64,000 nucleotides of DNA from Orbicella franksi (Eukaryota): positions 31,124,001-31,188,000 of the forward strand of contig OZ116703.1 in NCBI GenBank assembly GCA_964199315.1. Reading direction: 5' to 3'. The notes beneath the pieces were generated by a model. That model saw nothing but the letters and a program-made list of their open reading frames with translations. It was not told the origin of the DNA and searched no databases. Both the position numbers and the translations under genes were made by a program. Positions 32,063 to 58,073 of this stretch are shown in pieces (position 1 is the stretch's first letter; each line of letters starts with the position of its first letter).

Positions 32063-33661
32063 ATGCTAACAGCTACTGGAGAGATACCCAATCTTTTGCC
32101 AGAGATTGTTGAAAGGATAGCTCTGTTTCTACCAGTCCCAGAAGTCTGCAAATGTATGCAGGTTTGCAAACTATGGAAGGTAAGTAATGCTGCAACTATT
32201 AAAAAGCTTCAATTTGATCAATGCTTTCTGTAAGTTGAGGAATGTTATTTAGCTCTGAAATCACTTGAAGGCAAGGTAGATTTTCATAATTTATACCAGT
32301 CATTCAGTGAAAGTCATCCTGTATCTGTTCCATTTGAATCTGCACTTGAAATCTGAGCAACAGTTAAACATTCCTCCATTCCAGTCGATAGAGATGGCTT
32401 TAGTTTTGCTTCCAGTTTAGCCAGGTCTTTCAAGGAACAAATTTTAACTGCAGGACTGGCATCATCTTTACGAAGAAAAATATTTCCATAAAAGGACCAG
32501 ATATATCGAAACCTAAATTTCTTCTTGAATTCGTTAGATTTATGGAAAAGTTCCCTTCTAGATGGAGTTAAGCTTTCTTGAATAAAGATCTTGTTTTCTC
32601 CTTGTCTGCCCAGACCAATGTCATCAATGGTTAAATTCTTCAACTTGGATCTTGCTTTGTATTGACGTTTGTAAATTGCTTTGTATCGACCTTTGTATCA
32701 ATCTTGCTTTATATCGACCAGGTTAGAACTAATTATGGTTAAATTCAATACATACATTTCTCTGGTCCTTCTATCTGGAACAATTTGGATGAAGAGATAA
32801 AAAGTTTCTCCACGTTTATTTAAACAAACCTTGACTAAGCAATTTCTAAGTTCTTATGCTTAATGCTAGCTTAGTATTTTTCTTTAAGTTACTATTGCTC
32901 TTAATTTAACAATGCTCTGTCTATAACTGGTACTGTTACTACTTATATTTCTTTTTATATTTATATCTATATATATTTTTTCTCTTTCTAAATCTTCTTT
33001 TCTTTATTTTTCCTACAACCGATTTAAAGGGTAATAATTCTTGTAACTACTCAGCTCGTTTAGTTTTTACTATTTTGAGTAGGTTTTTTTTTTGCTTATT
33101 AAGTTTGATGTATTCTTTTGCTAAATGATATTCTATGTATTATGCAAAATAAAATGGTTATTGTTGTTGTTGTTCTCAATAAATTAATGTTTCTTTTGTT
33201 TCCAGGAACTTCTATCTTCAGAACAATTTTCTAAAATGTATGTGATTAACTATTTTAACCTGGATGTGGAAGATGAACCCACTGGTTTTTTAAAAACATG
33301 GAGCAATCCAGACTATTGGTTCTGCTACTGGGCCCGAAGAGAAAATGTTAATCAGGCTTGGGTATTTTCTGATCTTCCAAAGCGCTGGAAATGTGGAATA
33401 GTTCATTTGGCTGATTATTCACTTCAGACGCATCATGACTTGAAGTATAAAGATTTCTGCCGTGCTGTGTACATATTGACCAGGATACAAAGGATGGCAA
33501 AAGAATTGCGTTTGGACTGTGGTAATATTATTGAACCCCTCTGATATTGCCTCGGGTGTAAAATAATGTAGTTTGGTCCCAAGATTTCAAGATCGAAGTG
33601 CTTCATCTAAATTTGACCCCCCTGGGAATTTCTAATTTTTTTACATGGGCACAATAATAAT

Positions 33662-33711
<50 letters not shown>

Positions 33712-35130
33712 TGAAAAAATTACTCGATTCTGATTGGCTGAGAGCAGTGTAGTTCAAGTGTAACATCAGTGCAAAAAGTGTAACACCAGTGCAAATTACA
33801 CATTGTAATTCTGGGTTATGATTGGCTGAAAGACAAAAGGAAATTTTTGATGCCAATGATATTAGGTAAAATGATGAGGAAGATTTTGTGCGGAAACTTT
33901 GAAAAAAGTTTTCTCAAATGAGAAAAAATGGCTTCAAGCAAGGTCTTCTGGCACTTCCATGCAAAATTTTTCATGTTTATATTATTAATAAGTAATCATA
34001 CAGTTTTTCTCATTCAATTTGGAATTAATTTGCACTTGTGAGTTTTTCAAAAAGCTGAAATTGCACTCCTCGAAGCGACTTGTGCAATTTCAGCTTTTTG
34101 AAAAACTCACTTGTGCAAATTAATTCCAAATTGAACTAGAAACCGTATGGTTACCTATACTACTACTACTAATAATGATAATGACAGTGACAATAACAAT
34201 AACAATGGTAATGATATTAAATAATAATAATAGATATTTCTATAGACTAATTACTCATGATAATTTGCATAACAAAGAAATAAATACTGATTTCTGACAG
34301 AAAGCAGAGAAATTTTAACGTAAGTGATCGATGAGACGGTAAGCATGTCCCACTTACTAGTGAGGTACTAAGAATATAATTGTGTTTTTCCAGAAAATAT
34401 CGATGCCCCTCCCCCCTCAACAGAAGGGCTTTTTGATTGAACCCCCCATCCCTTCAGAAATTCCAGCTTCATCTCTTTAAAGATCTAAGACGGAATTTCC
34501 AGTGTTTGGTGGACATCAAGTTACCAGAATGATATCAGCTGCCAGTTGATTATTTTTTGGCACCTCTTTCCTTGAGGGAATGAAGCAACCTGTTCTTAAA
34601 CCATATTTTCTCATATTTTGTGCCATCAAGTTGTAGAACTACTGATGTTTAGAAATATTCCATTTCTTGCAAGTCATAACCATATGACTAAAGGAGTGTT
34701 TTCTTTTCATGGTCATTTCTCAGGAGCTTGGGGTAATGAAGGAGCTGGTCTTATAGAGGTTTGCATGTTTCCCTGGAGCAAACAGACTCTGCCCACTTCG
34801 GACGACATTTTATCAAGTTTCAACTTTCATCCTGAGATGCACAATGGCCCAATGGTGAAAAATGAAATAACAGCATTGAAGATTGATTCAGAGAAAGAAT
34901 CAGAGGACGGAATCCAAAGAGGGCATGTAAGATGGAATACGCTGCAGACGGCATATGATGCAGACGTCAAAAAAGCATGTGATTTCTTTGGCTGGCTTGA
35001 GAACATTTTCACTCCAATGACTCGTATTTGTATTGGGTGTGAGAGAATGAATCCAACACCATGTTTTATTTTGGCGCATCTTGCACCTGGGTGGGTGGGG
35101 GGCATTTTGTCATCTTTGGTTCTTACATGA
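32063..35130 (+). CDS. F-box protein with putative NuiA-like C-terminal domain, paralog 1 (at least 279 aa)
   Basis: Exons 32063-32179 (F-box LLPEIVERIALFLPVPEVCKCMQVCKLWK; acceptor at 31991), 33206-33521 (316 nt) and 34724-35130 (ends PGWVGGILSSLVLT-TGA). Intron phases and the 316-nt middle exon match paralogs 2 and 3. The N-terminus is uncertain: a possible in-frame upstream exon lies at 31049-31084. Confidence 0.88.
32230..33175. mobile_element. Rearranged CR1/L2-type LINE fragment in F-box paralog 1 intron
   Basis: - strand 32230-32661: ORF1 C-terminus (YKARSKLKNL...KIFIQESLTPSRRELF...WSFYGNIFLRKD) plus ORF2 start (YENLPCLQVISELNNIP). + strand 32703-33175: degenerate ORF2 end (VRTNYG...GPSIWNNLDEEIK), AATAAA and a (GTT)n tail. 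Confidence 0.75.
33653..33708. repeat. (AAT)n microsatellite
   Basis: Seen directly. Confidence 0.95.
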
Positions 35131-36432
35131 TAGACATTAGTCCTTCTTTTCTCATAGTTCATCGAGTGAGAATTGGAACCTTGTATATGGCTGGTGCTCC
35201 TGAAAATTAAATTAACCAATCACCATTCAAAAGGGAGGAGAAATAATTATTATTGTACCATCGTGATTCCATGTGTTTGTTAACAGGAAAGGCTTCTAAG
35301 TTCAGTCACATTCTCAGTGGTCTGAGTATAAATGAATTTTTGTGAGAAGAGATTTAAAATGCAAAAAAGCCATAACAAATTGTACAGATGAAAGATATGA
35401 AACATTTTGTTTCTCTAAGCTTTAAAATTGGTGTCAAAACTTGTTCGCAGTGAAATTAGCGGTATTAATTAAAAGGTAAAATTCCAAAGTTAAGAGGCCA
35501 TATTAGGCATGAAGAAATTTAAAAATAATAGTAAATGTTTACAGTGCCTTTTCTCAACAATTCAAAGGTGCTAAAATAGACATACTGAATATCGTTAAAA
35601 GTAGACAGCATGGCTTTGACTAGTGCTTGTTAAGTGTTTTTCCCAGCACATTATGCAAGGGAAAAGTGCTCAAGAATCTGGTATGCGTGTGTGGGGAGAG
35701 AGATTTATGTCTCCCCCTCGGTGGCTTTTTTTTTTTTTTTTGCTTCTCATAGAAAAGAAGGACTGCTTATGGTCATAATTTTTTCCCTGAATAATATATG
35801 TTTTGACATTTTTGTGTTTCAAAATCCTGATGTTGAACTGTCACTCAGGATTTCAAAACAACAGTAGCGTGAAAGAAAGTCAGATTTCACATTATTCTGA
35901 GACAAGGTAATCGAAAATGTAAAATGTAGAGAAATCATAATTTTGAGACCACAGAAGAAAGTCTTGATAATGAACATTTGGATAAATTAAGGTTTAACTA
36001 TGAAAGTTGAACTATTAAAAAACTGAATGATATGACTGAATGAATGATCCAATATTGAGGGACTGAAATGACCGAGTGCTTAAGGGAAGACTGGGTACAA
36101 GTACTCTGTAGTAATATAACAGACACGAATGACCGTGTTTGGCCAAAAATCCAAACACCGAGAAGAGAGTTGAAAAAATGGCGCGCAGCTGATTATTTTT
36201 GACGAACTTCGAGATGTTTGGAAATGTGGTCAAACACTGTCTTGAGTGTTTGATATATATTCTCAATCCAAATTAAAACTAAGGAGAAAACGCGAAGCGA
36301 AGCGATCTGGCGGGGAGGAGACTGGTGAAATAAGCGATATCCATCTTCACCTGTCTACACCCAAGTTTACCGTACATTTCTTAAATTTAAAATTTCATAC
36401 GTGGAATGAAAAAAATATTACAAATAGTCAAC

Positions 36433-36673: not shown

Positions 36674-38566
36674 ACTGGACGAGGTTGAGCAAAATATCGT
36701 GATTTGTCAGTTGCGAACAGATCAATTGTTTGCCGAAGGCCGAAGCAAATAATTGATCTGCGAGACTCTAACATATCACAATATTGTGAGATAATCGAGT
36801 TCAATGATTGTTTTATCACTTCATCAACAAGTTTGTTTCTCAATTTGTAGCTCTCTGATAGCTCGGGGAAGCGATCTGCCATTTTTCACACAAGTAGCGT
36901 GGTTACAATTACGCATGAGCAGAATATTATTTGCAGAAAAACACATTTGGACACCACTACGCATGAACAGAACATTATTTGTAGGCGGTTATTTGCCATT
37001 CTCGTCCCCAGAACCTCCGTTTCTTTTGATCACGTGGTCGGAGAAACGACATTTTAAGACCAGTAGCACTGGGGACGAGAATGGTTATTTGCAGGTCACG
37101 TGGTGAATTCTTTGCCAATGAAAAGGAAAAAAAATCCATTGAATGATAAAAATACTGTCTTGAAAATGTGCGTGGTCAGTTTTCGCATCGAGATTGGTTT
37201 ACTCTAATGGCTCTTATCTTCACGGTTTTTTTTAAGATTTTCCAAAAAAATGATAATAATATCAATAAATAAAGACACTTAAAGGCATGTTATTGTATAT
37301 TTCTGGGATAAAACTTTATTAGTCATTCCGTACACGTTACACTGAAATGTTTCACGTTTGTAATGAAACACTGAGCGATTCAGTTTGCAATGTTTTTCGC
37401 GAATATATAAATACTAAGGGTCGAGCTCTAGTACAACGTTTGTTTCTACTCTGTTATAATGTGTTACATTTCGCAAGGGTGAGTCGGTTTAAGGGTCTTA
37501 AAGGCGCGAAATATTGCTCTCTGACTCGTCCCATTTCGCGAAAATCTTTGCCGCGAGATCAGGACTGGTCAATTTTGAATATATATATACATATATAGCT
37601 AATATCTTTGAGGGAAATTAAAACTAAACAAAGTCAAAATAAAGTACATGACTAAATTAAATATGAACTAAAAAGGAATAATTCTTCCTCTTAATACGAC
37701 CATTCTTATATTTAAATCGGATTACTAACTGTGAAATATAGCCACGAATGAACCGCTTGACGTCGCTAGGAATGCGTCGCACGAATATTTTCATGAATTC
37801 TACGCCACGTGAAAATAACAAGCAGTGGGGTACGATTGTTATGTACATAAATCAAGCAACGAGATAACTTGTTTTTCTGAAATCTACCACAAAATAAATT
37901 TCGCTGACCAACTAACGACAAAAATTACCTCGATCGGTTCTCTTTTCATCAGATCCTTAAATAGCCAATCCCACTTACATCTCTTATTTGCAGGAAATGA
38001 CTGAAATACATATATTTAATTTTCGATTTCAAAGGTGATACACCGTCTTTTCTTTGTAAGAATATTGTTTTTCCCGCCCAGACTGAGTATTCTTATTTTT
38101 CTACCGATTTTAGGATGAAAATATTTTTGTGAATACTCTTAGACTATGCCGTACGACGTTTATGTTTTATTGCCTTTGATGGTGTTGAAGTAATTTTGGA
38201 GCCAGACGGCAGGCAACAAAGCCTGATATGGCACACACAACATCTTGCAAAAATGTTATTAGTATCGAACATTGGGCTAATGATGTTGTTGTTGATTTTT
38301 GGCCAGTTTGCCGTTTAAAGAAAGGAATAATTTTTTTACGATTTAGGTAAAAACAAATAATTGTATTATATTTACAAATTTTCAACACACAAGTATATTC
38401 TTTTCAAAATCTCAGTTCAGGGTTCATTTTTAAAATGTTCTTAAAATTTCGCAAATTTCACCTCGACATTCTTGTAAAATATATTTTTATAGGAAAAAAA
38501 GACGGACAGAAATAGTGTAATACTACCATGAACGTAATTCTGAACCCCTCAAATTCAGATTCAGGT

Positions 38567-38769
38567 TCACCCCGTTATAAAATCCTTCAGTATGAAATCT
38601 TGCCACTCGATGACTGTAAACCTGCCCGGTTCTTTCTCCTCCCCGCTCTGACTATCTTCTACGTTCATTTTGTCAAACAAGATTTCGTAGAAATCCAAAG
38701 GTTTGAAGATGTCCAATTGCAGCGCGCGCATCTGTTCCGGGATCAGATCCTTGGCATTTTCAGGCAAGT
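38567..38769 (-). pseudogene. 5'-deleted copy of the DIFKPLDF-family gene (paralog of 50933-51376)
   Basis: Retains [33 protein letters not shown]...GRFTVIEW. The 400 bp matching 51130-51529 of copy B, including the ATG, are absent (junction TTTTCAG|GCAAG). Confidence 0.8.
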
Positions 38770-41040
38770 ACGTTTTGAAAAAATCCCGAAGGACAGAAGA
38801 GAAAAAAAACGTGATGCTTTTGTGGGTACTGGAGCGACCAAGATACAACCATTGGACGGCATTGAATTCTACGGTAAGAAATAATAAACTGGAAATTCAT
38901 TATGCAAGAATAAGCGAGATCGGGCTGTGGAGGTGTCTTTAAAAGCGAGGAAAACATTAACAGGGGCGGAGCCAGGCTATTTTTAATTTTCGAGCGCCAA
39001 AGACTTTCTTAGTGCAGAGTGCCTTAGCGGTTGCCTACCGCTAAGGCACTATGGAACTAAGGCCCGAGGGCCTCAAGGTTCTAAGCCCCTAAGGCATTAA
39101 GGTGTAAACTTGAATGCTTGTTTTTTCAATTAATTATTTAGCACTGCAGCAAGTGATCAGGTGGGTTAGGTACCTGTGTTTCCCACGTAAAACAAGTTAT
39201 ACCCACCTCAAAGCTATACTTGTTTCAGAAAAGCCTTTGCTCTCCTTGTGGTACTATTCTCTTTAGAACAAAACCAATTTGTTCTAAACGCATGTGCAGA
39301 TTAGTTAGTGTTTGTGTTAACTAGACATTAGGTGGAAGATATAGTTCACACAGGATCACATACAAACGTTGAGTGCTTTTCCTTGTGGTAGAACCCAGCA
39401 TGTAAGATGCATGTGCTCTAGTATCGTTAGGGTTACACACTCCGGTTTCATCGCCAGCGCCACCTGGCTTTTTATATGTCACGTAATATAAATCTCAAAT
39501 GTATTTCAGACGTACAATCAGCTTGTAGAAGTCGTTTGGAGTATATATCAACTAGAATTGAAAATGAATGCTGATACAAAATATTCGTATAAAGATTATT
39601 ACTTTAATACAATAATCAATGTATACAATAGCATTGTTAAACACATTTTAGTCACTGTTGTATCAGACAACTCTAACAGAGGTATCATCTACCCACTCAA
39701 AACTAACATTAAATTATTTCTAAGAACCTATTAGCTTTAAATTAAATTATTAGCTCGAGATTTCTATGAAATGTAGCTAGATGTGAGGTTTGGCTAATTA
39801 TGTACCACAGCTCAGCCACTCAGATTGTAGCAATTGCATTAATTTTAAACCTATACTAGCAGAATTTTATCAAAAAAATTATCTAAATTCCATCTTAACA
39901 ACTTATTTTAAAGTTCATTTTTGAATATTATACTTAAATATATGTCATTCAAATTTGTTTTAAAATATCCAAAGTTATGCATTAAACTGTTAAAGTACAA
40001 GACTAGAAATATTTGAGAACCTGACTAAATGTGGAATCCTGTGACGGAAGCCACAAACCTCAGTCGACTGTTTTCACACTTATAAGTGTTCTCAAATATC
40101 GCATGGCTCTGGTACCTTTACACATATTGATTTACATCTGCGCAAACAAAAACAAACTATGGTGAGGTGTGTTTTCCACTTACATAACACATGGATTTCT
40201 TGTCAATCAGGAAAGCATGAGGTGTCCATGATTAAAGTTTTACCACAACATGCTGCTAATTTAATATTCTATCAACTCTGCTGAAAGTAAGCAGTTCATA
40301 AAAGAAGCTTAGACGCCGTCCCCATATGAGCTCTGACTGCATTTCAGTCTATCTAATGAAATTAGTCTAAAACTATTCACTCTCGTGTTTTTGTCATGAC
40401 TAAGCACAACGTTCAACAACATAAACTAATCGTCCTTACAATAAGAAAATCAAAACTGCATCCCATTAACTGACTGCTGTTGACCCTGAAAGAGTAAGCT
40501 GTATAGATGTTAGGTTAGCAACTGGTTATCTTGAGACAATTTTTTTTGGCAGAGTGACAACTTTTGTTATTTTTTCATTCTTCTTATGATCTATGAAAAA
40601 ATTATTCCACAAATTTTCTCTGCAAACATTACTTCACTTTGAAAACACAAAACACTATATGCAATGGATAGCAACAGTAACAGAGCTACTTTTAGACATA
40701 ACATTTCTCGGCAGAGTTTCTGACCATTCTCTCTCCACAGCAACACAAGACATAAAATTATTCTTAACATTCCAAGACAGCTGGAAGAGAAGCCCTGAGG
40801 CTTAGTCTGGTGGTTTGCAATAGGCTGTTTCTTGGTTCTTTCTTGCCTCTTATTACAAAATAAACTCAGGTGTAAAACGTCCTACAAAAATGGGTTTACT
40901 CACAAGTTTACTTTATAGAACTCCCAACCATTTCCATTTGAGTTACTTCAACAATGGCTAGTTTTGACACAGTAGCAAAAAACGCTCCAGATACATGTAA
41001 CCAATCGAAATAATGTTATTTCTAAGTATTGGAAAATGAA

Positions 41041-44000
41041 CTAAGTTAAAGCCAAAGATGTAAGCACGCCTCCCACCCACCCTGGGGAAAGTTTTGCCAG
41101 AATAAAACACGGCACTGGATTCATTGCATCACAACCAATGGCAATTCGAACCATTGTGGAGAATATTGGTTTGAGCCAATCAAAGAAAGTATTAGCCTTC
41201 TTTAGATCAACACTATACGATGTTCCTAAAGTATTCCAGCTGACATGGCCACGCCCTTCTTCGGAATCTTCATCTTCATTGTTGTCTTCTTCCTGCGACT
41301 CTGGTTCTTTATCATCAAACAATGGGTTGTTGTTCATCTCAGGATTAAAGTGAAAAATTGTAAAAATATCCTCTGCAGTAGGGAGGGTGTCTTTGTTCCA
41401 GCGAAACAAGCACGTTTCTACCTCACCTGTGCCCTCATTAGCCCAGGCTCCTAAAAAAATAATCATCACCATTTTAACAAAGAGATTCCTTATAACCACA
41501 TGTAACATATCACAGATGACATCAAAATGTTGTAAGAACAATAAAGTGGCTCATGAGCTGTTTGTAAGGACCAATAAAATTGCCAGGATAATTTGCCATA
41601 TTACATAACACTAAGAAGCCCAATTTACAGTTCTGCGAAAGGTAACTTGGCCTCCGCATGAAAGCAAGGTTTGGACCGACCAGATAAGAAACTATTTAAC
41701 ATGGCAAAAGAATAATTTACATTTGAAAACGAAAAAGATTTGTATCATAACAAAGACAAATCTAATAATAATAATAACAATAATAATAATAATAATAATA
41801 ATAGTAATTGTAATTGTAATAGTAATAGTAATAGTAATAGTAATAATAACAATAATTCTAATAATCTTATAAAAAACAATTTGGAAAAACATTTAAGCAG
41901 GAAAATTAATGTAAGTACAGTAACATGACGTTTCAATGACTTCATGTCATCATTGTCAAATGAACAAATTAAAAATGACAGCAAGGCACATTTATAGTAT
42001 TTAGGATGTGAGAAAATAAAATTAGCAAACATTACATGAAAACATTCACGTAAAACGTTTTGTGCAAATGGAATCCACTTGCAATATTCCATTTGTGCAA
42101 AACTTTAGCCTCGCTTCTGTTCAAAGGCCTGGGCTATTTATTGTGATGGCTCCAAGCCTCCATAATTTCAAAATCACCTCACCATAAAACTAGAAAATAT
42201 ATGACTCACAGTAAACTATTGATAATGTAAGTGTTCTGAACTCTGGGCTGGGCATTCAAAGAACAATTACAGAAAGCTTTGCCAGGATCTTTCAGCTGTG
42301 GTCTTGGCATGTTGCCAGGCAAAATGCCATGGATTAACCTGCTGTAACCTAGAATCTGAAGTGGTGCAGTGGCCTCATGGTTAGTGCACCCGCCTCCTGA
42401 TCGAGTGTTCCATGTTCAAGCCCTGGCCACAGACATTGTGTAGTGATCTTGTGCAAGACACTTTACTCTCATAGTGCCTCTCTCCACCCAGGTGTATAAA
42501 TAGGTACTGGTAAATTCAATGCTGGGGGATGACCCTGGATGGACCAGCATCGTATTCAAGAGGGGAGTAGAAATACTCCTAGTTGCTTCATGCAGCTGAA
42601 ATGGGGATGAGCACTGGCCTGATTAGCCACTTGGCTCGTATAGAGACTTTCCCTTTAACCCAACATCTGATCCATAATTATATGCACACGCCTAATAGTT
42701 AGCATACTGGACTTTGGACCTGGTGGTTTGGGTTCAAGCCCTGGCCTGCATCACTGCAAAGTGTTTTTGTGCAAAACATTCTGCTCTCACAGTACCTCTC
42801 TCCACCTAGGTATATAAATGTCTACCAGCATACATGTATTAAAAAGCTGATAGGAAACTCTGTGAGGGACTAAAAATCCCAACCAGGTGAAAAGTAGACT
42901 TGTACTCCTAGTCTCTTAATGCAACAGAAACTGGGATATTAGCTCTGGAGGTCTGGAAGGCAGACTTAACATCTACCCTAACCCTAAGACTCACTATTTT
43001 CCAGACGCTCTACCACTATCATGGTCAGATGCTAGTTGCCATAATGATTTATATTTCCATCACATTTGAAAGGGTCTTTTAATTATATGCCTAGGTAAAC
43101 ACCCAGTTTGGAAAATTCTCTATACCACTGATTAGTCTTCCAGTAAATAAATAAATATGATACAGTATTGTTTACCAATACAAATGTAATTTGTCTACCA
43201 AAACTAGCTTATTTCAATCCCCTATCCCAGACACCTAGAAAGCCATGCCCTTCACAGCAACTTACCGCAATCTAGCTCCAGATCCACTGCGGCAATCTGT
43301 ATCCTAGTCAAAATGTACAATGCCTTGAGAAGATCTTTATACTTAAGCTCTTTATCTGACTCTATTGTATGATCGGCCAAATGGACAATGCCACATTTCC
43401 AGCGCTTTGGAGGGTCAGAGAACACATATACATTAGATTTGTCTGCATTTTCATCCCAGTAATAGAACCATTCATCTGGAGTAGTCCACACATTGAGATG
43501 CCCAGTCGGTTCCTCTTCATCAGTTAAATTATAGTGTCTGAGCACATAGTGTTTACAGAACTGCTCTGAAGAAAGAAGTTCCTAGATAACAAATAAAAAG
43601 AGTGATAATTTTTTAGCATCACTTTTTGAGATTTTGTTTTTGTAAAAATACCTTTTAGTTGTTGGGTCTGGGCTATGTTATGAGTGGAGGAATGGATGAG
43701 TGAGTGAGTGAGAGATGTATGAATCATAGTAAGTGGTTTCAACCCAGGAGTATCAGTAGTTCCTCTTGTGTGATCCTCCGGGTGAGGGTAAGTTCTGAAA
43801 AGTACTGTTGTTGGTCACTGATGTTTCAACAACCTGAGCAATATTATTGAATATTACTTGTCAGGCAATGGTGATACAAGTCTGGTCCACTGTAAGGTAA
43901 GAGTAGATGAGATAGTATTGGCTGAAAGACTTGCGTAAAGTTTGTCAACAGTCATTGGTTGGTTCTAGTAAGTTTGGATCTGTCTATTTCGTGAAATTAA

Positions 44001-46086: not shown

Positions 46087-47192
46087 GTTTCGGAACAAAA
46101 AATGTGCAAGGCGTTATATCCGAGCGTAATTGTCACCAGTCTCTTGCACTCACGACGTAAATTTATGTATCGAGCATGGCAAATATACACAGTTTCGAGC
46201 AGTTTTCACTTCTACTTTTATCGATAAATACTACCATTTTTTCACAGTCGGTTGCAAACCTACATAAGGGGTTTAGGGACTGGGTTGGCCTTTTAAAAAC
46301 GGAACAGTTTTTTCTGGTTGGACTCGCAGCGACAACGACTAGCCGTTTTTGTACTAAAATTCGAACAACTTCCCAACGCTGGAAACTCTTGTAGACTCAC
46401 CGTCTTTCCTACCTAGCTTCTATATGCATGAAAGAATATGCTGACCAAAAATTGCAAATTACCTTAGCCTCTTCTAGGCGTTCAGTTAGTTGGGGCGCAT
46501 TGCGAAAATTGCCGCTCTTCTCCCCTATTTTTTCGCTCGCCGATTTTAGCGCTGTGCCCTAACCAACCGAACGCCTGGAAGAAGCTAAAATTACCCAGAT
46601 ACACATCGTAGTGATACAACGCAATACCAAAGACGGTTTCGTTAACTTTATTTCGTGATTTCGACATTATCTATCGACAGAAAGTCATGCCTACGTCTCG
46701 AGAAACAGATTTCCTAGTGTATGAAAGGGTTGAAAAAATTCGTGCCTGTACTAGATCACCCACCCATCCCACCCCGTCTTCAAAAGTCAAATTGTTCACC
46801 CCAAGGTTATAACATGGTATTTCTTTTATTCTTTATCTTGTTCTTTTTGAGAGCCTCTGACTCTTCTTTCTGGAAACTATGCCAACAACAGTAAAAAACA
46901 AGGCCAACTCCAATCTTAATTTAATTCCCCGACCAACATGCTGAAAACGTCAAACATTTAATGCGCTAAAAACGTGAATGATTAGTTCATAACCTCGCGC
47001 ACTTGACAGAATCCTCGAGAAATCTTCAATGGTTTTTCTGGCCAGAATATAGGTCTGCGATTACGAGGAAATATAGTCTAATAAACTGACTTCTTAGTTT
47101 ATTGTGACAGAACTAGGAGAGGTTAAAACTTTATTACTGATGAAAGCCGTGTCATTATATGAACAATGGAGTTAGGAGAATACAAAACCAAC

Positions 47193-47484: not shown

Positions 47485-48639
47485 CTAAACAAAACAGAAG
47501 AAAACTTAAAACGTTGGCAAACCAACAGCCTGCGAAATCAGCCGTCCTTCTCGAAGGACGGCTGTTTTGGCAGGCTAGCATATCAAGTTCTTTAAAAAAT
47601 TATTTACATTTTGTCCGTCCAACACCAAACTTAATATAAGTCTCGCGCGTTGACAAGAATGTTTTTCATAGCATGCTAAAAGGTTAACAGCTGAAAATGA
47701 AAGCAGAGACACACAAAAACACCTTTCATTTTTTAAGAGGCAATGCAGTGTTTTGAAGTATTGATCATAAATGTGTTGAGAGTGTGAGATAGAAAAGGTT
47801 AAGTACGTACAATAGATATGCAAAATCCCTCAACTTGCTTTAAGATCAGCCATATAAATATCACCGTTTACGAAAAACAAAACAGGTTACAATATCAAAG
47901 AATACATACACATATAGCTAATATCTTCGAGGGAAATTAAAACTACACAAAGTCAAAATAAAGTACATGACTAAATTAAATATGAACTAAAAAGGAATAA
48001 TTTTTCCTATTAATACAACCATTCTTATATTTAAATCGGATTACTAGCTGTGAAATATATAGCCGCGAATGAACCGCTCGACGTCGCTAAGAATGCGTCG
48101 CAGGAATATTTTCATGAATTCTACGCCACGTAAAAATAACAAGCAGTGGGGTACAACTGTTTAATATGTACATACATCAAGCAACGATATAAGTTGTTTT
48201 TCTGAAATCTACCGCAAAGTAAATTTCGCTGACCAACCAACGACAAAAATTACCTCAATCGGTTCTCTTTTCATCAGATCCTTGAATAGCCGATCCCACT
48301 TAAATCTCTTATTTGCAGGAAATGACTGAAATACATATTTAATTTTCGATTTCAAAGGGGATACACCATCTTTTCTTTATAAGAATATTGTTTTTCCGGC
48401 CCAGACTGAGTAGTCTTATTTTTCTGCCGGTTTTAGGATGACAACGTTTTTGGGAAGACTCTTAGACTATGCGTATGACATTTCCGTTTTATTGCCTTTG
48501 ATGGCGTTGAAGTAATTTTGGAGCCAGACTGCTGGCAACAAAGCCTGATATGGCACACAAAACTTCTTGCAAAATTTTATTAGTATCAAACATTCGGCGA
48601 GTGCTGTTTTTGTTTATTTTTGGCCAGTTTGCCGTTTAA

Positions 48640-50680
48640 GGTCATTCAACTGAAATAGAACCTGTACTGAGATTTTTGTCAAACTTTGCCTATTGATTGT
48701 TTATATTATAGGAACTTAAATTTTGAAATAAAAATGAGGGGTCCCCATGTTCGTTTAGGAGCAACAGCACCTTGTCTATACCCATATAAATCCTTATAAT
48801 AGCACCATGATTGTAGACATGATTGCTCGCTAAATTCACGTTTCCGACGACTGTTTTTTTGTTCTACACTAAGAATTGGTCCATAAATATTTTACACAGA
48901 GAAATTTATTACTTAATTCAAAACAACAGAAATAAAAAGATAGTTCACCATACTCGTTAGCGAGAAAATGACGATTTATCTCTATGGCGAGGTCTGTACG
49001 GGTCCGCAAATGATCCCGGACCGCAAATGATCCCCAAATTGGACCGCAAATGATCCCGGACCGGAAATGATCCCCATATTGGACCGCAAATGATCCTGAT
49101 CAAAAAATAAGGAATGGCATGGATGGTGGGATGGTGTAAATAGGGAATTGGCGTACGTGAATACCGATGTTTTCATTAAAACCATCTTATAATTATAATG
49201 GCTTACAACTTGCTTTTTTTCATACTTTCGACTAAATTTTGTCGCTAACTACGATGTTATGAATATCACCACTCAATCATCAAAACACGACTTGGCTTGC
49301 ATTTCTTTGCAATTCTCAGTAAAATTATGATCAGTGCAACATACGCTACATATCCTCCTTTGTTAAACATTGATAATTCGGTGTTATAGTTAAATCACAT
49401 TTTATCAGCCAACGCCACTCGTCTAAAGTTTTAAACTAAAATCTAACCATGAAGCAACTATTAATGAAGACGCTGCACCTGAGTAGACCTACAAGCCTAC
49501 AACGCCGGCTACAACGCTTCATTACTCTGTAAAACACCTAGTGGTCCCCGGGTAGTGGTCCCAGTGTGTAGCACTGGAAATTTGAACAAATTTGTTTTGT
49601 AATTTTTCCTTGGTCGTATTTTGGCTTTAATTCCTCGGAAATGACTACTTGAGAATTCTAAGAAGCCAAAATTCCAAGCTATAATTATGAACTTCAGCTG
49701 CATGACCACGCAAGGCCAAGGCTTGCGCTTCGTTTGACAATTAGCTGTTTGATAGATGTTTGATACTATCGCCACCGGGATTTCGAGAATGTTTACAAGT
49801 GTGTATCTTTCTAAGACTTCTAATTCAATAGATCGTCGTCACGTGACGTGTTTTTATCCTCATCAGGCATAAGAGGCGGTATACCTATATCTGTTTACAA
49901 TTAGCGTGCTTCGTTTGGAAACCAGAGCATTTTGAATTTCAGGGTTATGGAGGTTGCGTGACACAGGGCTACGATCGAGTTTGTTGAAAAATATATACTT
50001 ATCTCATGATTTTGAGCCTTTTTAGAAGTTAGAGCATTAGAAAAAGGGTTATGTTATTGCTTGTTTGTTTAGTACTGATAATCAGTCGCCTAGAAAGCCA
50101 AAATAAGTTCCAGATTTTAAACTATATTCCGGCCGCCATATTGGTGTACCACAGATGTACACCCGGCCAACATGGCGTTTTCTTACTGGGCAGTGTAAAT
50201 TTCTGGGAAACATTTACGACGAATATCTGAAGTTTGGGGAAACGCACAGGCTTAAAACTTGGAGAAGTGCCTTATTTAGTTATCTTCTATAGGGTACATT
50301 ACAATTTCTTAGCTTTTTCCATTGGCTGGTTTTCGATTTATTATTTTTTTTTTTATTGCGTAACAGCGAAAACGATCTGTACCCTTCGCAGAACAAAACA
50401 GCAACTGTGGAATATTTTTTTGTAAAATGATAAAATTTGTTTTTAGTTCATTATTTTTGTACATGTTCTCACCTTCCTCTGATATAAATCCATGCCATTC
50501 CTTATTTTTTGATCGGGATCATTTGCGGTCCAATATGGGGATAATTTCCGGTCCAGGATCATTTCCGGACCCGTACAGGTCCAGCTGTAAAGAAAAAGCC
50601 GCCATTTTTTAATGCGCGCGCGCTAATCACGCGCGAAATTATGCGCAGTAGGGATGCGCAATGCAATACTGGGAATGACC
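48640..50680. mobile_element. TTAA-targeting non-autonomous DNA transposon (Kolobok-like, ~454 bp) interrupted by a nested element
   Basis: TTAA (48636-48639), GGTCATTC...GAATGACC, TTAA (50681-50684). The empty TTAA site is at 38315-38318 in copy A. The superfamily call rests only on the TTAA TSD and purine-purine termini. Confidence 0.8.
48995..50577 (+). mobile_element. 1.58-kb non-autonomous TIR element, copy 1
   Basis: TGTACGGGTCCGCAAATGATCCC...GGACCCGTACA termini with subterminal GGACCGCAAATGATCCC repeats. Direct repeat GGTC at 48991-48994 and 50578-50581. No transposase ORF. Confidence 0.9.
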
Positions 50681-50932
50681 TTAAAGAAAGGAACAATTTT
50701 TTTACGATTTAGATAAAAACAAATAATTGTATTATATTCGCAAATTTTCAACACACAAGTATATTCTTTTCAAAATCTCAGCCCAGGGTTCATTTTTAAA
50801 ATGTTCTTAAAATTTCGCAAATTTCACCTCAACATTCTTGTGAAATATATTTTTATAGGGAAAAAAGACAGACAGAAATGGTGTAATACTACCATGAACG
50901 TAGTTCTTAACCCCTCAAATTCAGATTCAGGT

Positions 50933-51376
50933 TCACTCCGTTATAAAATCCTTCAGTATGAAATCTTGCCACTCGATGACTGTAAACCTGCCCAGTTCTT
51001 TCTCCTCCCCCCTCTGACTATCTTCTACGTTCATTTTGTCAAACAAGATTTCGTAGAAATCCAAAGGTTTGAAGATGTCCAATTCCAGCGCGCGCATCTG
51101 TTCCGGGGTCAGATCTCTGGCATTTTCAGTCAACATCCGGTCTTGCAGATAGGGACTGGTAGAGGTCGTGGCGAAAAAACTGCTACACGACATGGTTTGA
51201 TTTTGACTTCGAAATGATCCTTGCTTTTCATTCACTGCCGGTTGTTTAGTGGGAAGATCAGTGACACTGTTGGATCGTGTTCTAGCAAGTTCTGCGTGCC
51301 CAGAGCTGGTTTTCTTGCCTTTCGCTCTTTGAGATTTTACGCTGGTTTCATCCGCGACTTCTCTCGTTGCCTCCAT
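50933..51376 (-). CDS. Intronless 147-aa DIFKPLDF-family protein
   Basis: Open frame MEATREVADE...TMSCSSFFATT...[36 protein letters not shown]...GRFTVIEWQDFILKDFITE. Confidence 0.8.
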   Translation of the reverse strand: MEATREVADETSVKSQRAKGKKTSSGHAELARTRSNSVTDLPTKQPAVNEKQGSFRSQNQTMSCSSFFATTSTSPYLQDRMLTENARDLTPEQMRALELDIFKPLDFYEILFDKMNVEDSQRGEEKELGRFTVIEWQDFILKDFITE

Positions 51377-53882
51377 TTTTAGTGCCAGATATCCTGAAGC
51401 GTACTGAGTATTTGAAGAATAATGCAATCATGTTTAAATTTCCAAGGCGTGGTCAAGAAAAGTGTTTTGTTTGTTCAAGTTGCCATGGCCACTTGAATCA
51501 ACAAACGTATGTTGTTTTGTTCAGTTCAAGCAAGTACGTTTTGAAAAGATCCTGCAGAACAGACTAGAAAAAAACGTGATGCTTTTGTGGGTACTGGAGC
51601 CATCAAGATACAAACATTGGACGGCATTGAATTCCACGGTAAGAAATAATAAACTGGAAATTTATTATGCAAGAATAAACAGAATGGGGCTGTGGAGGTG
51701 TCATCAAAAGCTAGGAAAACATTAACAGGGGCGGAGCCACGCTATTTTTAATTTTCGAGCGCCAAAGACTTTCTTAGTGCAGAGTGCCTTAGCGGCTGCC
51801 TACCGCCCTAAGGCACTATGGAACTAAGGCCCTAGGGCCCTAAGGCTACAAGGCCCTAAGGCATCAAGGTGTAAATTCGAATGTTTGTTTTTTTCAATTA
51901 ATTAATTAGCACTGCAGCAAGTGATCGGGTGGGTCAGGTACCTGTGTTTCCCACGTAAAACAAGTTATACCCACCTCGATTGGTTGATAAAGATCAAAGC
52001 TATATACTTGTTTCAGAAAAGCCTTTACTCTCCTTGTGGTACTATTCTCTTTAGGACAAAACCAATCTGTTCTAAAAGCATGTGCCGATTAGTTAGTGTT
52101 TGTGTCGACAAGACATTAGGCGGAAGATATATTTCACATGGGATCACATACAAAAGTTGAGTGCTTTTCCTTGTAGTAGAACCCAACATGTCAGACGCAT
52201 GTGCTCTAGCATCGTCAGGGTGACACACTCCGGTTTCATTGCCAGCGCCTTTTTATATGTCATGTAATATAAATCTCAAATGTATTTCAGATGTACAATC
52301 AGCTTGTAGAAGGCGCTTGGAGTATATATCAACTAGAATTCAAAATGAATGCAGATACAAAATATTTGTGTAAAGATTATTACTTTAATACAATAATCAA
52401 TGTATACAATAGCATTGTTAAACACATTTTAGTCAGTGTTGGTGAAATTGTATCAGACAACCCAAACAGAAGTATAATCTACCCACCCAAAACTAACACC
52501 TACTGATTTCTAATAACCTGTTAGCTTTAAACTAAATTATGAGCTCAAGACTTCTATGAGATGTAGCTACATGTGAGGTTTGGCTGATTATGTACCACAG
52601 CTCAGCCAATCAGATTGCAGCAATTGAATTAATTTTAAACCTATACTAGCAGAATTTTATCAAAAAATTATCTAAATTCCATCTTTAACAAATTATTTTT
52701 AAGTTCATTTTTGAATATTATCCTTAAATATGTGTCATTCAAATTTTAATGTTTAAAATATCCAAAGTTATGCATTAAGCTGTCAAAGTACAAGACTAGA
52801 AATACTTGAGAACCTGACTGAATGTAGGATCCAGTGACGGAAGCCACAAATGTCAGTTGACTGTTTTCACACTCTTCAGTGTTCTCAAATAGTGCATGGC
52901 CTGGTACCTTTACACATATTGATTTACATCTGTGTGAGCAAAAACTATGGTGATGTGTGTTTTCCACTTACATAACACATGGATTTCTCGTCAATCAGGA
53001 AAGCACGAGGTGTCCATGATTAAAGTTTTACCACAACATTTTGCTAATTTAATATTCTATCAACTCTGCTGAAAGTAAGCAGTTCATAAAAGAAGCTTAG
53101 ATGCCATCCACCTATGCGTTCTGACTGTATTTCAGTCTATCTAATGAAATCAGTTTAAAACTGTTCACTCTCGTGTGTTTGTCATGACTGAACACAACAT
53201 TCAACAACATAAACTAATCGTCCTTACAATAAGAAAATCAAAACCGGAGGAAAAAAAAAAAACAGTACGTCCCATTAATTGAGTGGTGTTGACCCTGAAA
53301 GAGTAAGCTGTATAGTTGTTAGGTTAGCAACTGGTTACCTCAAGACAATTTTTTGCCAGGGTGACATCTTTCATTATTTTTCCATTCTTTTCATGACCTA
53401 TGAAATACTTATTCAACAAATTTTCTCTACAAACATTACTTCACTTTGAAAACACAAAACACTATATGCACTGGATAGCAACAGTAACAGAGCTACTTTT
53501 AGACAAAACATTACTCCGCAGAGTTCTGACCATGCTCTCTCCACAGCAACACAAGAAAGGCCCTAGGTATAAGTGTAGCCAGTATTCTGACAAAATTATT
53601 TTTAACATCCCAAGACAGCTGGCAGAGAAGTCCTGAGGCTTAGTCTGGTGGTTTGCAATAGGTTGTTTCCTATTTCTTTCTTGCCTCTGATTACAAAATA
53701 AACTCAAGTGTAAAAGGTCCTACAAAAGTGGGTTTACTCACAAGCTTATTTTATAGAGATCACAACCATTTCCATTTGTGTTACTTCAACAATGGCTAGT
53801 TTTGGCACAATGGCCAAAAAGAAACCCCTCCAAATATGGTAACCAATGGAAATAATGTTATTTCTAAGTATTGGAAAATGAA

Positions 53883-56800
53883 CTAAGTTAAAGCCAAAGA
53901 CGTAAGCACGCCTCCCACCCAACCTGGGGAAAGTTTTGCTAGAATAAAACACGGCACTGGATTCATTGCAGTACTACCAATGGCAATTCGAACCATTGTG
54001 GAGAATATTGGTTTGAACCAATCAAAGAAAGCATTAGCCTTCTTTAGATCAGCACTATATGATGTTCCTAAAGTATTCCAGATGACGTGCCCACGCCCTT
54101 CTTCGGAATCTTCATCTTCAATGTTGTCTTCTTCCTCCGAGTCTGGTTCTTTATCATCAAACAATGGGTTGTTACGCATCTCAGGATTAAAGTGAAAAAG
54201 TGTAAAAATATCCTTTGCAGTAGGGAGGGTGTCTTTGTTCCAGGGAAACAAGCACGTTTCTACCTCACCTGTGCCCTCATTACCCCAGGCTCCTAAAAAA
54301 TAATCATCATCATTTTAACAAAGAGATTCCTTATTACCACATGCAACAGATCACAGATGACATCAAAATGTTGTAAGAACAAAAAAGGGGCTCATGAGCT
54401 GTTTGTAAGAACCAATAAAACTGCCAGGATAATTTGATATATTATACAACACTAAGAAGCCCAAATTACAGTTTTGTGACAGGTAACTTGGCCTCCGCAT
54501 GAAAGCAAGGTTTGGACTGACCAGATTAGAAGATTACTATTTAACATGATGAAATAATAATCTACATTTGAAAAGTAACAAGATTTGTATCATAACAAAG
54601 ACTAATCTAATAATAATAACGATAATGATAACCATAACAAACAATAACAATAATAATAACAATAACAATAATAACAATAACAATAACAATAATAATAATA
54701 ATAATAATAATAACAACAACAATAATAATAATAACAACAACAAAAATAATAATAACATAGTTTTAAAACCAGGGTAATTCGGTCACCAAATACTGTTATC
54801 AAGGGGTTCCCTGAACAAATTAAATAGAACTTAAATAACAATAAAAGTCCTAAAAACATTACAATAAATGTAGTAAATGATAAAAGCTATATACAATATT
54901 TAAAAATTCTAAGAGCTTTCACTAAAAAAGTCCTTAATCATTATTTTAAAAATTAACAGAGATTTAGTTTCTTGCATGCTGGATGGTAGCCTCTGTTCAA
55001 AGGCCTGGGCTATTTACTGTGTTGGCTCCAAGCTTCCATAATTTCAAAATCACCTCACCATAACACTAGGAAATATATGACTCACAGTTAACTACTGATA
55101 ATGTACAAAGTGTTCTGAACTCTGGGCTGGGCATTCAAAGGACAATTACAAAAAGCTTTGCCAGGATCTTTCAGCTGTTGTCTTGGGCAAGTTGTCTGGT
55201 AAAATGCCATGGATTAACCTGCAGTAACCTAGAATCTGAGGTGGAGGCGCAGTGGCCTCACTCACCTCCTGATCGAGCCCTGGCCACAGACATTGTGTTG
55301 TGACCTCGGGCGAGACACTTTACTCTCATAGTGCCTCTCTCCACCCAGGCGTCTAAATAGGTATTGGCAAATTCAATGCTGGGGGATAACCCTGGATGGA
55401 CTAGAATCCCATTCACAAGGGGAGTAGAAATACTTCTAGTCACTTCATGCAGCTGAAACAGGGATGAGCACTGGCCTGATGGGCCACTTGGCTTGTGTAG
55501 AGACTTTCCCTTTAACCTAGCATCTGATCCAAAACTATATGCACAAACCTAATAGTTAGCATACTGGACTTTGGACCTGGTGGTTTGGGTTCAAACCCTG
55601 GCCTGCATCATGCCTGGGTAAACACCCAGTTTGGAAAATTTCCTATACCACTGATTAGTATCCCAGTAAATAAATAAATATGATACTGTATTGTATACCA
55701 ATACAAATGCAATTTGTCTACCAAAACTAGCTGATTTCAATCTCCTATCCCAGACACCTAGAAAGCCATGCCCTTCACAGCAACTTACGGCAATCTAGGT
55801 CCAATTCCACTGCGGCAATCTGTATCCTAGTCAAAATGTACAATGCCTTGAGAAGATCTTTATGCTTAAGCTCTTTATCTGACTCTAGCGTATAATCGGC
55901 CAAATGGACAATGCCACATTTCCAACGCTTTGGAGGGTCAGAGAACACATATACATTAGACTGGTCTACATTTTCATCCCAGTAATAGAACCATTCATCT
56001 GGAGTAGTCCACACATTCAGATGCCCAGCTGGTTCCTCTTCATCAGTTAAGTTATAGTGTCTGAGAGCATAGCGTTTACAGAACTGCTCTGAAGAAAGAA
56101 GCTCCTAAGTAACAAATAAAAAGAGTGATAACTTTTTAGCATCACTTTTTGAGTTTTTGTTTTAGTAAAAATACCTCTTAGTTGTTGTGTCTGGGCTATG
56201 TTGTGAGTGGAGGAATGGATGAGTGAGTGAGAGATGCACGTATCATTAGATAGTAAGTGGTTTGAACCCAGGAGTAACGGTAGTTCGTCTTGTGTGATTG
56301 TCCGGGTGAGGGTAAGTCATGGAAAGTACTGTTGTTGGTCACTGACATTTCGACAACCTGAGCAATTGAATATTGCTTGCCAGGCAATGGTGATATAAGT
56401 CTTGTCCACTGTAAGGTAAGTGTAGCCGAGAGAGTATTGTAATGTTTATCAACAGTCATTGGTTGGTTCTAGTAGGTTTGGATCTGTCTATGGTGTAAAA
56501 TTATGTCGGTCAGTTTGAGGTCCATCTACTGTGAGTCATAAAACTGACTGGGACTCTGCTCAATGCTTTACCTACGCTACAAATTATTTTCAGTGACTTT
56601 AGAAATAGCTAGTGCACTAACTTAGAACAATCACCCTACCAGCACCTCACAAACGACTTATTCACTACAAAAACAAAACCGACAAGTGGACTCAAACAGA
56701 CCTACTTAATTTGACAAATCATTTTTGTCTCAGAACTTACTAAAGAGTTCAAACATGTACTCACCTTCCATTCTTTACAGACTAACATACAGTTGCACAC

Positions 56801-58073
56801 TTCTGGCAAAGGTAAGAACGAAACTATTTTTGAAATTACTTCTGATGGTAGGAAAGGAATAGTTGTCATCTTGTGTTTTGGAGAAGAATCGCTCTGTGTA
56901 AAAACAAACCAAAGATGTGCTCATCAGTTGTACAAGTAATTAGCTATTCATTAACCAGTTTGAGTAACGCAGTGGCCTCATGGTTAGCGTGCTCGCCTCT
57001 GGATCAAGCGGTTCAGGTTTGGGCCCTGGCCGGTGACAATTTGTGTGGTTCTCTTGGGCAAGACACTTTAATCTCACAGTGCCTCTCTCTGGCCAGGTGT
57101 CTAAATGGGTACTGGTAAATTTAATGTTAGGGGTAACCTTGCGTTGGACTGGTATCTCATCCAGGGGGGAGTAGAAATACTCCAAGTCACTGCATGCTAC
57201 TGAAACTGGGAATAAGCGCCGGCCTGATGGGCTACTTGGTTATTATAATTTAAGACTTTACCTTGAGTAACTTGTGCTGACCTTTTTTAAATGGCTTGAA
57301 GCGAATTTCATGTCCCATAAATGGCAACAGTAGTCCACATTTTTGAGGCCCCATGGGGGTATCTTATATCCCGTTAATTTTTGGCTTAAATATTCTGCAT
57401 CCGTTAATAATTTCTTATTTCAAAAATTAGCAATTTCCCTCGTTGTATCTAGGGATATCTGTTCTACATATCCGCTATCTTATTAATTTTTTCACCCAAA
57501 ATTAATATTCTGTATCCCATCAATTTTGTCTCTATTTTTTATCCTCCCGTATCCCCAAAAAAACCTAAAAGGGTCTCCGGAGAGTATGGCCCACCAGTTC
57601 AAAGATTGTAGCCCAATAACATAATAAGCATTAACTGAACACTGTTGTCTATTATAAAGTCGCCCCGCCAAAGATTACAAAAAAAAAGCTTCAATATTAA
57701 TTCGAAACTTATCTCGGGATGATCGATAATAATAAAAGATTAGTTATCATATTAGTTATCATGTGTTATTAAATAAAATTATAAATGCAAAAGTGATTAT
57801 TCGTGCATAAATTAAAATGCAAGTTAAGTTAAATAGTAAAAACAACTTTCATGTTTATGCATCCAGCAAGAAACTGCGAGAAAACATGAATGGTTGCACG
57901 TTTGCTGATCGCGTTGCAATTTACGCTAAGTACAACGCAAAATGCACAACATAAAATGCTTTGACCCTTAAATTTCTTCTTTTACGGAACACAGTTCACA
58001 TGACTAGTCATAACAGTGTCATTCTCGTTGTATCCTCACTCACCTGTTTCTGCAGCTGGGTGACTTCAGCCAT
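53883..58073 (-). CDS. F-box protein with putative NuiA-like C-terminal domain, paralog 3 (294 aa)
   Basis: Exons 58073-58044, 56893-56765, 56104-55789 and 54292-53883 have the same lengths as paralog 2 (30/129/316/410 nt). All GT-AG, no stops. Confidence 0.9.

Follow-up and report, generated by a model that had tools for sequence, protein, structure and literature searches.

F-box proteins with a predicted NuiA-like domain in the stony coral Orbicella franksi

We show that three genes of the stony coral Orbicella franksi, here denoted A, B and C, are selectively constrained members of a conserved marine-invertebrate F-box family, with RNA support for gene A. They lie within a stretch of 64,000 nucleotides that was analysed as a whole (the window). 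For the C-terminal domain of these proteins, modelling predicts a NuiA-like alpha/beta fold with high confidence. Structural modelling suggests a previously undescribed route by which animals may capture nucleases. Independent of function, the domain represents a conserved and previously unnamed family which is matched by no Pfam model, and which in structure comes closest to a bacterial inhibitor.

Gene structure, conservation and family distribution

Each of the three genes is intact and consists of three exons (Table 1), with canonical GT-AG introns and reading frames that are open throughout. A tblastn search of the window with coral orthologs as queries recovered these three copies and no others. 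An earlier interpretation of this DNA, made without database searches (the sequence-only reading), had described three intact F-box genes of shared architecture, and this is borne out by the gene models and by Pfam F-box matches. The motifs which it quoted were all found, i.e. the Trp-rich middle region and the C-terminal ends SLVLT, SLALT and SLALT of genes A, B and C, respectively. The end which it gave for the feature, 58073, falls approximately 1.2 kb past the start codon of gene C at 56869.

Both splice joints of gene A (32179/33206 and 33521/34724, each GT..AG) are present in poly-A RNA reads and in assembled transcripts. Exon 1 is followed by a GT donor at 32180. From about 33425, exon 2 encodes a long helix which is the counterpart of helix alpha-1 of NuiA, and exon 3 carries the Glu of an N-E-G motif (34738-34740), the terminal Thr codon (35125-35127) and the stop codon (35128-35130).

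Table 1. Positions in the window of the three genes, their exons and the duplicated segments.
Feature	Position	Strand	Length or support
Gene A, exons	32063-32179, 33206-33521, 34724-35130	+	279 aa
Gene A exon 1: start codon and F-box, 39 aa	32063-32179	+	Pfam F-box, RNA joint
Gene A exon 2: end of F-box, Trp-rich linker, long helix	33206-33521	+	Splice sites; both flanking joints in RNA
Gene A exon 3: core of NuiA-like domain (predicted)	34724-35130	+	
Gene B, exons	44405-44301, 43581-43266, 41450-41041	-	276 aa
Gene B exon 1: F-box	44301-44405	-	Pfam F-box 36.8 bits, gene model
Gene B exon 2: linker and alpha-1 helix	43266-43581	-	tblastn with P0009, 80% identity; GT-AG
Gene B exon 3: NuiA-like domain (predicted); terminal Thr codon 41044-41046, then stop	41041-41450	-	
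Gene C, exons	56869-56765, 56104-55789, 54292-53883	-	276 aa
Gene C exon 1: F-box	56765-56869	-	Pfam F-box-like 39.8 bits
Gene C exon 2: linker and alpha-1 helix	55789-56104	-	tblastn, gene model
Gene C exon 3: NuiA-like domain (predicted); terminal Thr codon 53886-53888, then stop	53883-54292	-	
Tandem segmental duplication (~10 kb), copy 1, with gene B	37583-47000		blastn
Tandem segmental duplication, copy 2, with gene C	47902-58515		blastn

Genes B and C each lie in one copy of a tandem segmental duplication, the two copies being aligned by blastn in collinear blocks of 87-95% identity. They are recent duplicates, with proteins that are 90% identical, a dS of 0.10 and a relaxed dN/dS of 0.45. 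This relaxed ratio is what might be seen if the three genes were functionless, decaying duplicates or artefacts of prediction, as might two unusual substitutions: in exon 3 of gene B the nearly invariant FPW of the family is replaced by FRW (Arg for Pro), and gene C has Ser-Thr at a site where its relatives carry Cys-Asp/Glu. However, all three frames and their splice sites are intact, the gene A transcript is spliced exactly as modelled, dN/dS between A and B/C is 0.16-0.21, and orthologs are present in other corals. Decay or artefact was rejected on the basis of the RNA joints and dN/dS; for gene A it is largely refuted, and for the three genes together we consider it extremely improbable.

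The exon 1 peptides of A, B and C match the Pfam F-box with 26.1, 36.8 and 37.6 bits, for a gathering score of 20.5 bits (PF00646/PF12937), and the orthologs P0005, P0009, P0012 and P0007 also match. The predicted structure is a three-helix F-box which resembles F-boxes seen bound to Skp1. In the full-length model of P0005, an ortholog from Oculina, the F-box, linker and NuiA-like domain form one rigid and confidently predicted unit (pTM 0.89), of which the F-box and linker resemble the substrate receptors Fbs2, FBXO31 and FBXO3.

The family occurs widely among marine invertebrates. An exhaustive homolog search gave 71 representative clusters; a word-indexed search with a diverse alignment added little. 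Members include sequences of anthozoans, of amphioxus and of an annelid, as well as one euglenid transcriptome, and a fragment in the AlphaFold DB (A0A7S3DTI6) may be a further member. The fusion of F-box and NuiA-like domain is kept across distant animal groups. One family member has an additional N-terminal WGR domain, a domain which occurs in PARP enzymes. No description of the family was found in the literature searched.

Structural and sequence comparison with NuiA

Structure and remote homology searches were carried out with exon sequences and with P0005 in place of the spliced window proteins; P0005 is the nearest relative of gene A in the tree, and is 70-75% identical to it over exons 2-3. 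AlphaFold2 models built without templates reached pLDDT values of 90.9 and 93.2. In Foldseek the best match was chain B of 2o3b, which is NuiA (probability 0.98, TM 0.49), with all other matches at TM ≤0.30, and in the ESM Atlas the best shape match was a NuiA cluster, with a TM of 0.61 on both sides over 110 aligned residues. The NuiA-like fold proposed in the sequence-only reading was thereby recovered with the tools, AlphaFold and Foldseek, which it had named as a check. Residues 113-279 of the full-length P0005 model align with residues 1-143 of NuiA, and in structural comparison NuiA, aligned end to end, outscores the fold ranked second by over 3 Z units. Related sandwich folds of unrelated function are also matched, weakly, and a search of the Swiss-Prot part of the AlphaFold DB returned no reviewed protein with a TM above 0.3. 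Language-model features point in the same direction, as clusters of NuiA or NuiA_2 ranked first for all three divergent members used as queries (scores of 0.92, 0.88 and 0.88; mutual identity 25-32%), and scores fell sharply after the NuiA families. A SUKH-like fold was also considered, because FBXO3 pairs an F-box with SUKH, and was rejected, as FBXO3 matches only the F-box and linker (residues 6-131) and not the C-terminal domain.

Sequence comparison gave a different picture. Neither PF07924 nor PF23151 matched the window domains or 44 family members even at an E value of 10, and scans of the C-terminal domains and 44 relatives with Pfam and NCBIfam found nothing besides the F-box. Searches of PDB sequences with family HMM profiles did not return NuiA, giving only chance matches, e.g. 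myoglobin and UTP14. With hhalign, the family alignment A3 was compared to NuiA alone, to 32 NuiA homologs and to 199 NuiA homologs; local P values were 0.009-0.02 over 28-30 columns and the global P was 0.3, which is non-significant, the NuiA alignments being narrow (Neff 2-3, cyanobacterial). The A3 HMM scored NuiA sequences at a median of 2.2 bits, a value reached by 6.7% of shuffles in the shuffled and reversed controls, and because these scores lie within the shuffled range they were dropped as evidence. Widening the NuiA profile by homolog search and contig scan yielded sequences that were nearly all cyanobacterial and at least 46% identical, a set too narrow to bridge the gap. The sequence similarity to NuiA which had been proposed is not detectable by Pfam, by HMM search of the PDB or by hhalign, even if hhalign does recover the alignment originally proposed, without significance. 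The NuiA strings quoted in that proposal were exact, with a 25-residue C-terminal string matching NuiA of Nostoc PCC 7120 at 100% and the remaining strings found in the translation of the same protein. The assignment of the domain as NuiA-like draws its support from predicted structure and not from sequence statistics.

Genes A, B and C, together with 12 of 12 aligned coral homologs, have the terminal Thr (one homolog has one residue beyond it), and the named octocoral members from Paramuricea and Xenia likewise end in Thr. Conservation of this residue, which had been expected, holds in these corals but not in the amphioxus-type and '...YAV'-type subfamilies, which end 2-3 residues earlier and have no terminal Thr. 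Structural alignment places residue 134 of the model opposite residue 135 of NuiA. The sole invariant Gly of the family lies 8 residues ahead of the terminal Thr, and the offset is the same in NuiA, from the invariant Gly127 to Thr135. Glu24 of NuiA is reported by Ghosh and co-workers (2007) to reach into the active site of the nuclease. In the N-E-G loop the anthozoan clade keeps, alongside a free C-terminal Thr, a Glu which hhalign sets opposite Glu24, in an alignment which is itself non-significant. Within A3, all 16 N-terminally complete sequences whose tail is 8 residues long and ends in Thr carry this Glu. The short-tailed members (tails of 5-7 residues) in which the column is occupied number 11, and 10 of them lack it, the exception being P0057. 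Distant subfamilies (amphioxus and others) have neither Thr nor Glu. The co-occurrence of the two residues may stem from shared ancestry rather than from joint function. The last residue of NuiA, Thr, is a ligand of the catalytic Mg2+ (PMC5587815; PMC2790893), in agreement with the contact to the nuclease metal described in the sequence-only reading.

Possible capture of nucleases by an SCF receptor

The coral protein would be the part of an SCF ubiquitin ligase that receives the substrate, with its NuiA-like domain docking in the active site of a nuclease of the beta-beta-alpha-Me type and its terminal Thr touching the nuclease metal, as in NucA-NuiA. A nuclease captured in this way would be both blocked and ubiquitinated. 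The candidate target would be either an EndoG-type enzyme of the animal itself, strayed from the mitochondria, or a microbial nuclease toxin. That an SCF receptor with a NuiA-like domain captures, blocks and ubiquitinates a metal-dependent nuclease is a tentative proposal, to which we give only a little less than an even chance.

A good possibility, if clearly short of an even one, is that the proteins are SCF adaptors whose C-terminal domain is a general protein-binding alpha/beta sandwich, which happens to be nearest to NuiA in shape, and which bind some substrate other than a nuclease. A structural role would then fall to the Thr, and to the Gly that lies 8 residues ahead, in closing the last beta-hairpin and packing on the linker. 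The non-significant sequence comparisons and the weak matches to sandwich folds of unrelated function are consistent with this. So are the subfamilies without Thr and Glu; that these retain the F-box, the linker and the remaining domain shows the scaffold to be selected independently of the two residues. Against a general sandwich are the lead of NuiA over the next fold along its whole length, the agreement of three independent language-model queries followed by a sharp drop, and the retention together, in the clade of the window genes, of the Thr and Glu, which would correspond to the residues that NuiA inserts into the active site. F-box proteins within SCF complexes also undergo autoubiquitination, and the NuiA-like domain could be a stoichiometric inhibitor whose F-box mainly sets the level of the inhibitor itself rather than delivering a nuclease. 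The evidence from the fold bears equally on this explanation and on nuclease capture, but the rigid unit formed by F-box, linker and NuiA-like domain matches known substrate receptors and the fusion is kept across distant animal groups, and we regard autoubiquitination as the main role to be improbable.

Nuclease capture by an SCF receptor could be placed in a wider setting, which is more speculative and which we hold to be unlikely as a whole. Marine invertebrates would use the receptor in surveillance against stray EndoG-type nucleases or nuclease toxins of intracellular or surface microbes, plugging the metal site with its own Thr so that the nuclease is silenced and marked for degradation. 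This would be a second, independent case after FBXO3-SUKH in which an anti-nuclease immunity fold of prokaryotes has become a substrate module of a eukaryotic E3 ligase. If nuclease capture itself holds, the family would be a new class of animal nuclease regulator, and would tie the ubiquitin system to coral cell-death control or anti-microbial defence, both of which bear on bleaching and disease. Whatever its function, the family adds a second example to the idea that bacterial immunity proteins have repeatedly been recruited as substrate-recognition modules of eukaryotic E3 ligases.

Comparison with known systems

NuiA, by which NucA is inhibited in Nostoc/Anabaena PCC 7120 (PF07924; PDB 2O3B chain B and 1J57), has no significant sequence similarity to the coral domain. 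It stands alone, whereas in the coral proteins the domain shares one chain with an F-box and a linker domain, and bears in its middle an acidic insertion that varies in length. NuiA inhibits NucA; the coral domain is a candidate inhibitor. The nuiA gene adjoins nucA in Nostoc, whereas the coral genes have no adjoining nuclease gene in the window, where tblastn with NucA found none. Such adjacency of nuclease and inhibitor genes is not expected in animal genomes. Pfam NuiA_2 (PF23151), which is common in fungi, is likewise a eukaryotic NuiA-like domain, and clusters with PF23151 are language-model neighbours of the coral domain, but the coral proteins do not match its model.

A possible functional analogue is Drosophila EndoGI, which protects against EndoG-type nuclease that has gone astray and does so by blocking its metal site, binding via a water of the metal's hydration shell and not via a terminal residue (PMC2790893). 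No other protein from an animal that inhibits an EndoG-type nuclease was met in the literature consulted. EndoGI differs from the coral proteins in having an unrelated helical repeat fold and no F-box.

The closest precedent for the coral family is FBXO3, an F-box protein in which SUKH, a recruited bacterial nuclease-immunity domain, binds the substrate (Zhang, Iyer & Aravind 2011, PMC3113570). The sequence-only reading knew of no such animal system; the NuiA-like version is indeed undescribed in the literature searched, but the principle had already been described for FBXO3-SUKH (PMC3113570). FBXO3 and the fungal F-box-SUKH proteins use the SUKH fold to bind substrate, whereas the coral proteins would use a NuiA-like fold. 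FBXO3 also carries an ApaG/DUF525 domain, in which the coral family differs, and it occurs in vertebrates and plants, whereas the coral family has the anthozoan, amphioxus, annelid and euglenid distribution given above.

Gene models, expression and duplication

The window is eukaryotic, with ~38% G+C, and its closest protein relatives come from the stony corals Oculina patagonica and Montipora. Searches with coral orthologs (tblastn) found exactly three family copies in the window, genes A, B and C, which encode an F-box, a Trp-rich linker and a C-terminal domain resembling NuiA, the cyanobacterial inhibitor of the nuclease NucA. The sequence-only reading had placed three such genes at 32063-58073, and what it observed holds in every detail save the end coordinate, which lies ~1.2 kb past gene C.

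Features of the F-box locus, in window coordinates
Feature	Position	Strand	Description
Gene A	32063-32179, 33206-33521, 34724-35130	+	three exons, canonical GT-AG, frames open; 279 aa
Gene B	44405-44301, 43581-43266, 41450-41041	-	three exons, canonical GT-AG, frames open; 276 aa
Gene C	56869-56765, 56104-55789, 54292-53883	-	three exons, canonical GT-AG, frames open; 276 aa
Tandem duplication, ~10 kb	37583-47000 vs 47902-58515		87-95% nucleotide identity; one copy holds gene B, the other gene C
Further pieces of the duplicated unit	60142-60329, 63298-63614
Duplicated ORF between the F-box genes	38567-38848, 50933-51427	-	conserved stretch in common, including FTVIEWQDFILKDF
Low-complexity runs, last introns	41692-41892 (B), 54537-54860 (C)		long trinucleotide and low-complexity runs, same position in both

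Both gene A splice joints (GT..AG) fall at the predicted bases in poly-A RNA reads and in transcript contigs assembled from coral samples, and a single 1,560-nt transcript contig covers all three exons. dN/dS is 0.21 (A-B), 0.16 (A-C) and 0.45 (B-C); the genes are expressed and under constraint. Within the gene A introns, RNA contig depth at 32900-33200 and 33720-34180 is 10-100x the exon depth, with many reads continuing into unrelated sequence; these stretches look like interspersed repeats transcribed from other genome sites.

The proteins of B and C are 90% identical (56-57% for A against either), and their dS of 0.10 is the same as the divergence of the flanking duplicated DNA. In a tree of the C-terminal domain, gene A groups with Oculina LOC144632585 (P0005) and genes B and C with LOC144632613 (P0009). 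In gene B the Pro of the FPW motif, nearly invariant in the family, is replaced by Arg (~41350-41360), and in gene C Ser-Thr precedes MNP where relatives carry Cys-Asp/Glu (~53990-54000); these changes could reflect relaxed constraint or post-duplication divergence. The duplicated ORF has no match in Pfam; it may belong to a repeat, or be one exon of a gene that is not annotated. The runs in the last introns of B and C yield spurious poly-Ile, poly-Asn and poly-Leu ORFs.

Fold and ancestry of the C-terminal domain

The sequence-only reading had proposed AlphaFold and Foldseek as a check. AlphaFold2 modelled the gene A exon-3 domain (34726-35127) confidently (pLDDT 90.9, pTM 0.83) from 44 diverse relatives and without templates. 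Among PDB matches in Foldseek, the chain 2o3b_B of the NucA-NuiA complex stands out (probability 0.98, TM 0.49 across the full length), all others having TM <=0.30; all E-values are weak. In the ESM Atlas the top shape match is a cluster consisting entirely (100%) of PF07924, the Pfam NuiA family (110 residues aligned at 3.1 A, with a TM of 0.61 on both sides). NuiA is again the top match outside the F-box for a full-length model of P0005, where residues 113-279 align with NuiA 1-143; because this alignment reaches upstream, the long helix ending exon 2 corresponds to the NuiA N-terminal helix. The predicted structure shows a rigid fusion carrying a NuiA-fold domain. Bacterial matches among AlphaFold DB clusters, one of them named 'Nuclease', likewise have the matching domain at the extreme C-terminus, and no reviewed Swiss-Prot protein has TM >0.3 to the domain.

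Protein language-model searches used gene A, P0058 (a family member ending ...YAV) and P0026 (a member containing WGR), which are 25-32% identical to one another. The nearest neighbours of all three were clusters of NuiA or the related Pfam family NuiA_2 (PF23151), with scores of 0.92, 0.88 and 0.88; of 256 features, 191-212 were in common. Dozens of NuiA clusters rank ahead of a sharp fall to ~0.55.

The sequence statistics, in contrast to the structure, are negative. The Pfam NuiA and NuiA_2 models detect authentic NuiA, whose sequence came from plasmid alpha of Nostoc PCC 7120, and have no match even at E 10 in the window's domains or any of the 44 relatives. Family profiles searched against PDB sequences did not retrieve NuiA, and HMM scores on real NuiA sequences were indistinguishable from those on shuffled sequences. 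With ~200 cyanobacterial homologs gathered, hhalign of the coral-family profile recovered the coral-NuiA alignment proposed in the sequence-only reading, pairing coral N-E-G...IEV.FPW with S-E-S...FEVFLW locally (P 0.009-0.02) and the whole domain globally (P 0.3); the NuiA alignments are narrow (Neff 2-3). A NuiA fold for the domain is well supported, and true homology with NuiA is likely, with no proof by classical criteria.

Family spread and terminal residues

When 1.84 billion representative proteins were searched exhaustively with a profile, 71 family clusters were found, with named members in the octocorals Paramuricea and Xenia, amphioxus, the annelid Owenia and a euglenid transcriptome, and a second coral paralog type in Montipora. 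The F-box is genuine. Pfam detects it in 15 of the 45 members examined, and a full-length alignment shows the architecture of F-box, linker and domain to be common to the family. WGR domains occur in PARP enzymes. In P0026 (Logan transcript contig, L082:19-1314), closest in sequence to octocoral-type members, an N-terminal WGR lies ahead of the F-box, linker and NuiA-like domain, with Thr at the end; it lends weak support to a tie with DNA biology.

The C-terminal Thr of NuiA is a direct ligand of the catalytic Mg2+ in NucA (PMC5587815; PMC2790893). Conservation of this residue, part of the original proposal, holds for 12/12 coral homologs in the first alignment (the very last residue in 11, followed by one extra residue in the other), but not for members with 5-7-residue tails. 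Across 44 domains the sole invariant residue is a Gly 8 residues ahead of the terminal Thr, and the NuiA family has an invariant Gly127, 8 residues ahead of Thr135. Glu24 of NuiA is reported by Ghosh et al. (2007) to enter the nuclease active site as well. The Glu that the non-significant hhalign alignment places opposite it, in the N-E-G motif of the exon-3 loop, is present in all 16 sequences with a complete N-terminus and an 8-residue tail ending in Thr; those with 5-7-residue tails (ending YAV, YSI, GLW etc.) carry Lys, Arg or His at that position or have a gap, P0057 being the one exception. The anthozoan clade keeps NuiA-like terminal residues. The Thr-ending state occupies one of two major groups in the tree, with scattered losses, so its co-occurrence with Glu may represent only a few evolutionary events; some losses may be truncated predictions.

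Possible targets and known systems

We suggest that the protein would serve as the substrate receptor of an SCF ligase and dock, through its NuiA-like face, onto a metal-dependent nuclease, which would then be ubiquitinated and probably inhibited. Candidate targets would be endogenous enzymes of the EndoG/EXOG type found outside mitochondria, as Drosophila EndoGI suggests by analogy, or alternatively microbial nuclease toxins. A nuclease target is possible, at somewhat less than even odds. The main rival reading is a general binding module with a non-nuclease substrate, which both the Thr-less subfamilies and the missing sequence signal to NuiA keep alive. No nuclease gene was found within the window by tblastn with NucA. 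On Nostoc PCC 7120 plasmid alpha (L001:2171-3411), nuiA and nucA adjoin and are convergent. Their neighbours include a NucS-domain gene and the toxin-antitoxin pair ParD/ParE. A second nuiA-like gene lies on another plasmid of this Nostoc (NC_003267).

The family resembles NuiA in fold and terminal residues but fails the NuiA sequence-profile test, and is therefore named NuiA-like rather than a member of PF07924. Pfam already holds a fungal NuiA_2 family, so eukaryotic NuiA-like domains are not new as such. The full-text literature searched gave no description of the F-box and NuiA-like architecture. The F-box family is real and conserved, and its substrate domain has a NuiA-like fold. Its logic parallels that of FBXO3 and fungal F-box-SUKH proteins, in which a bacterial anti-nuclease immunity domain sits where an F-box protein recognises its substrate (PMC3113570).
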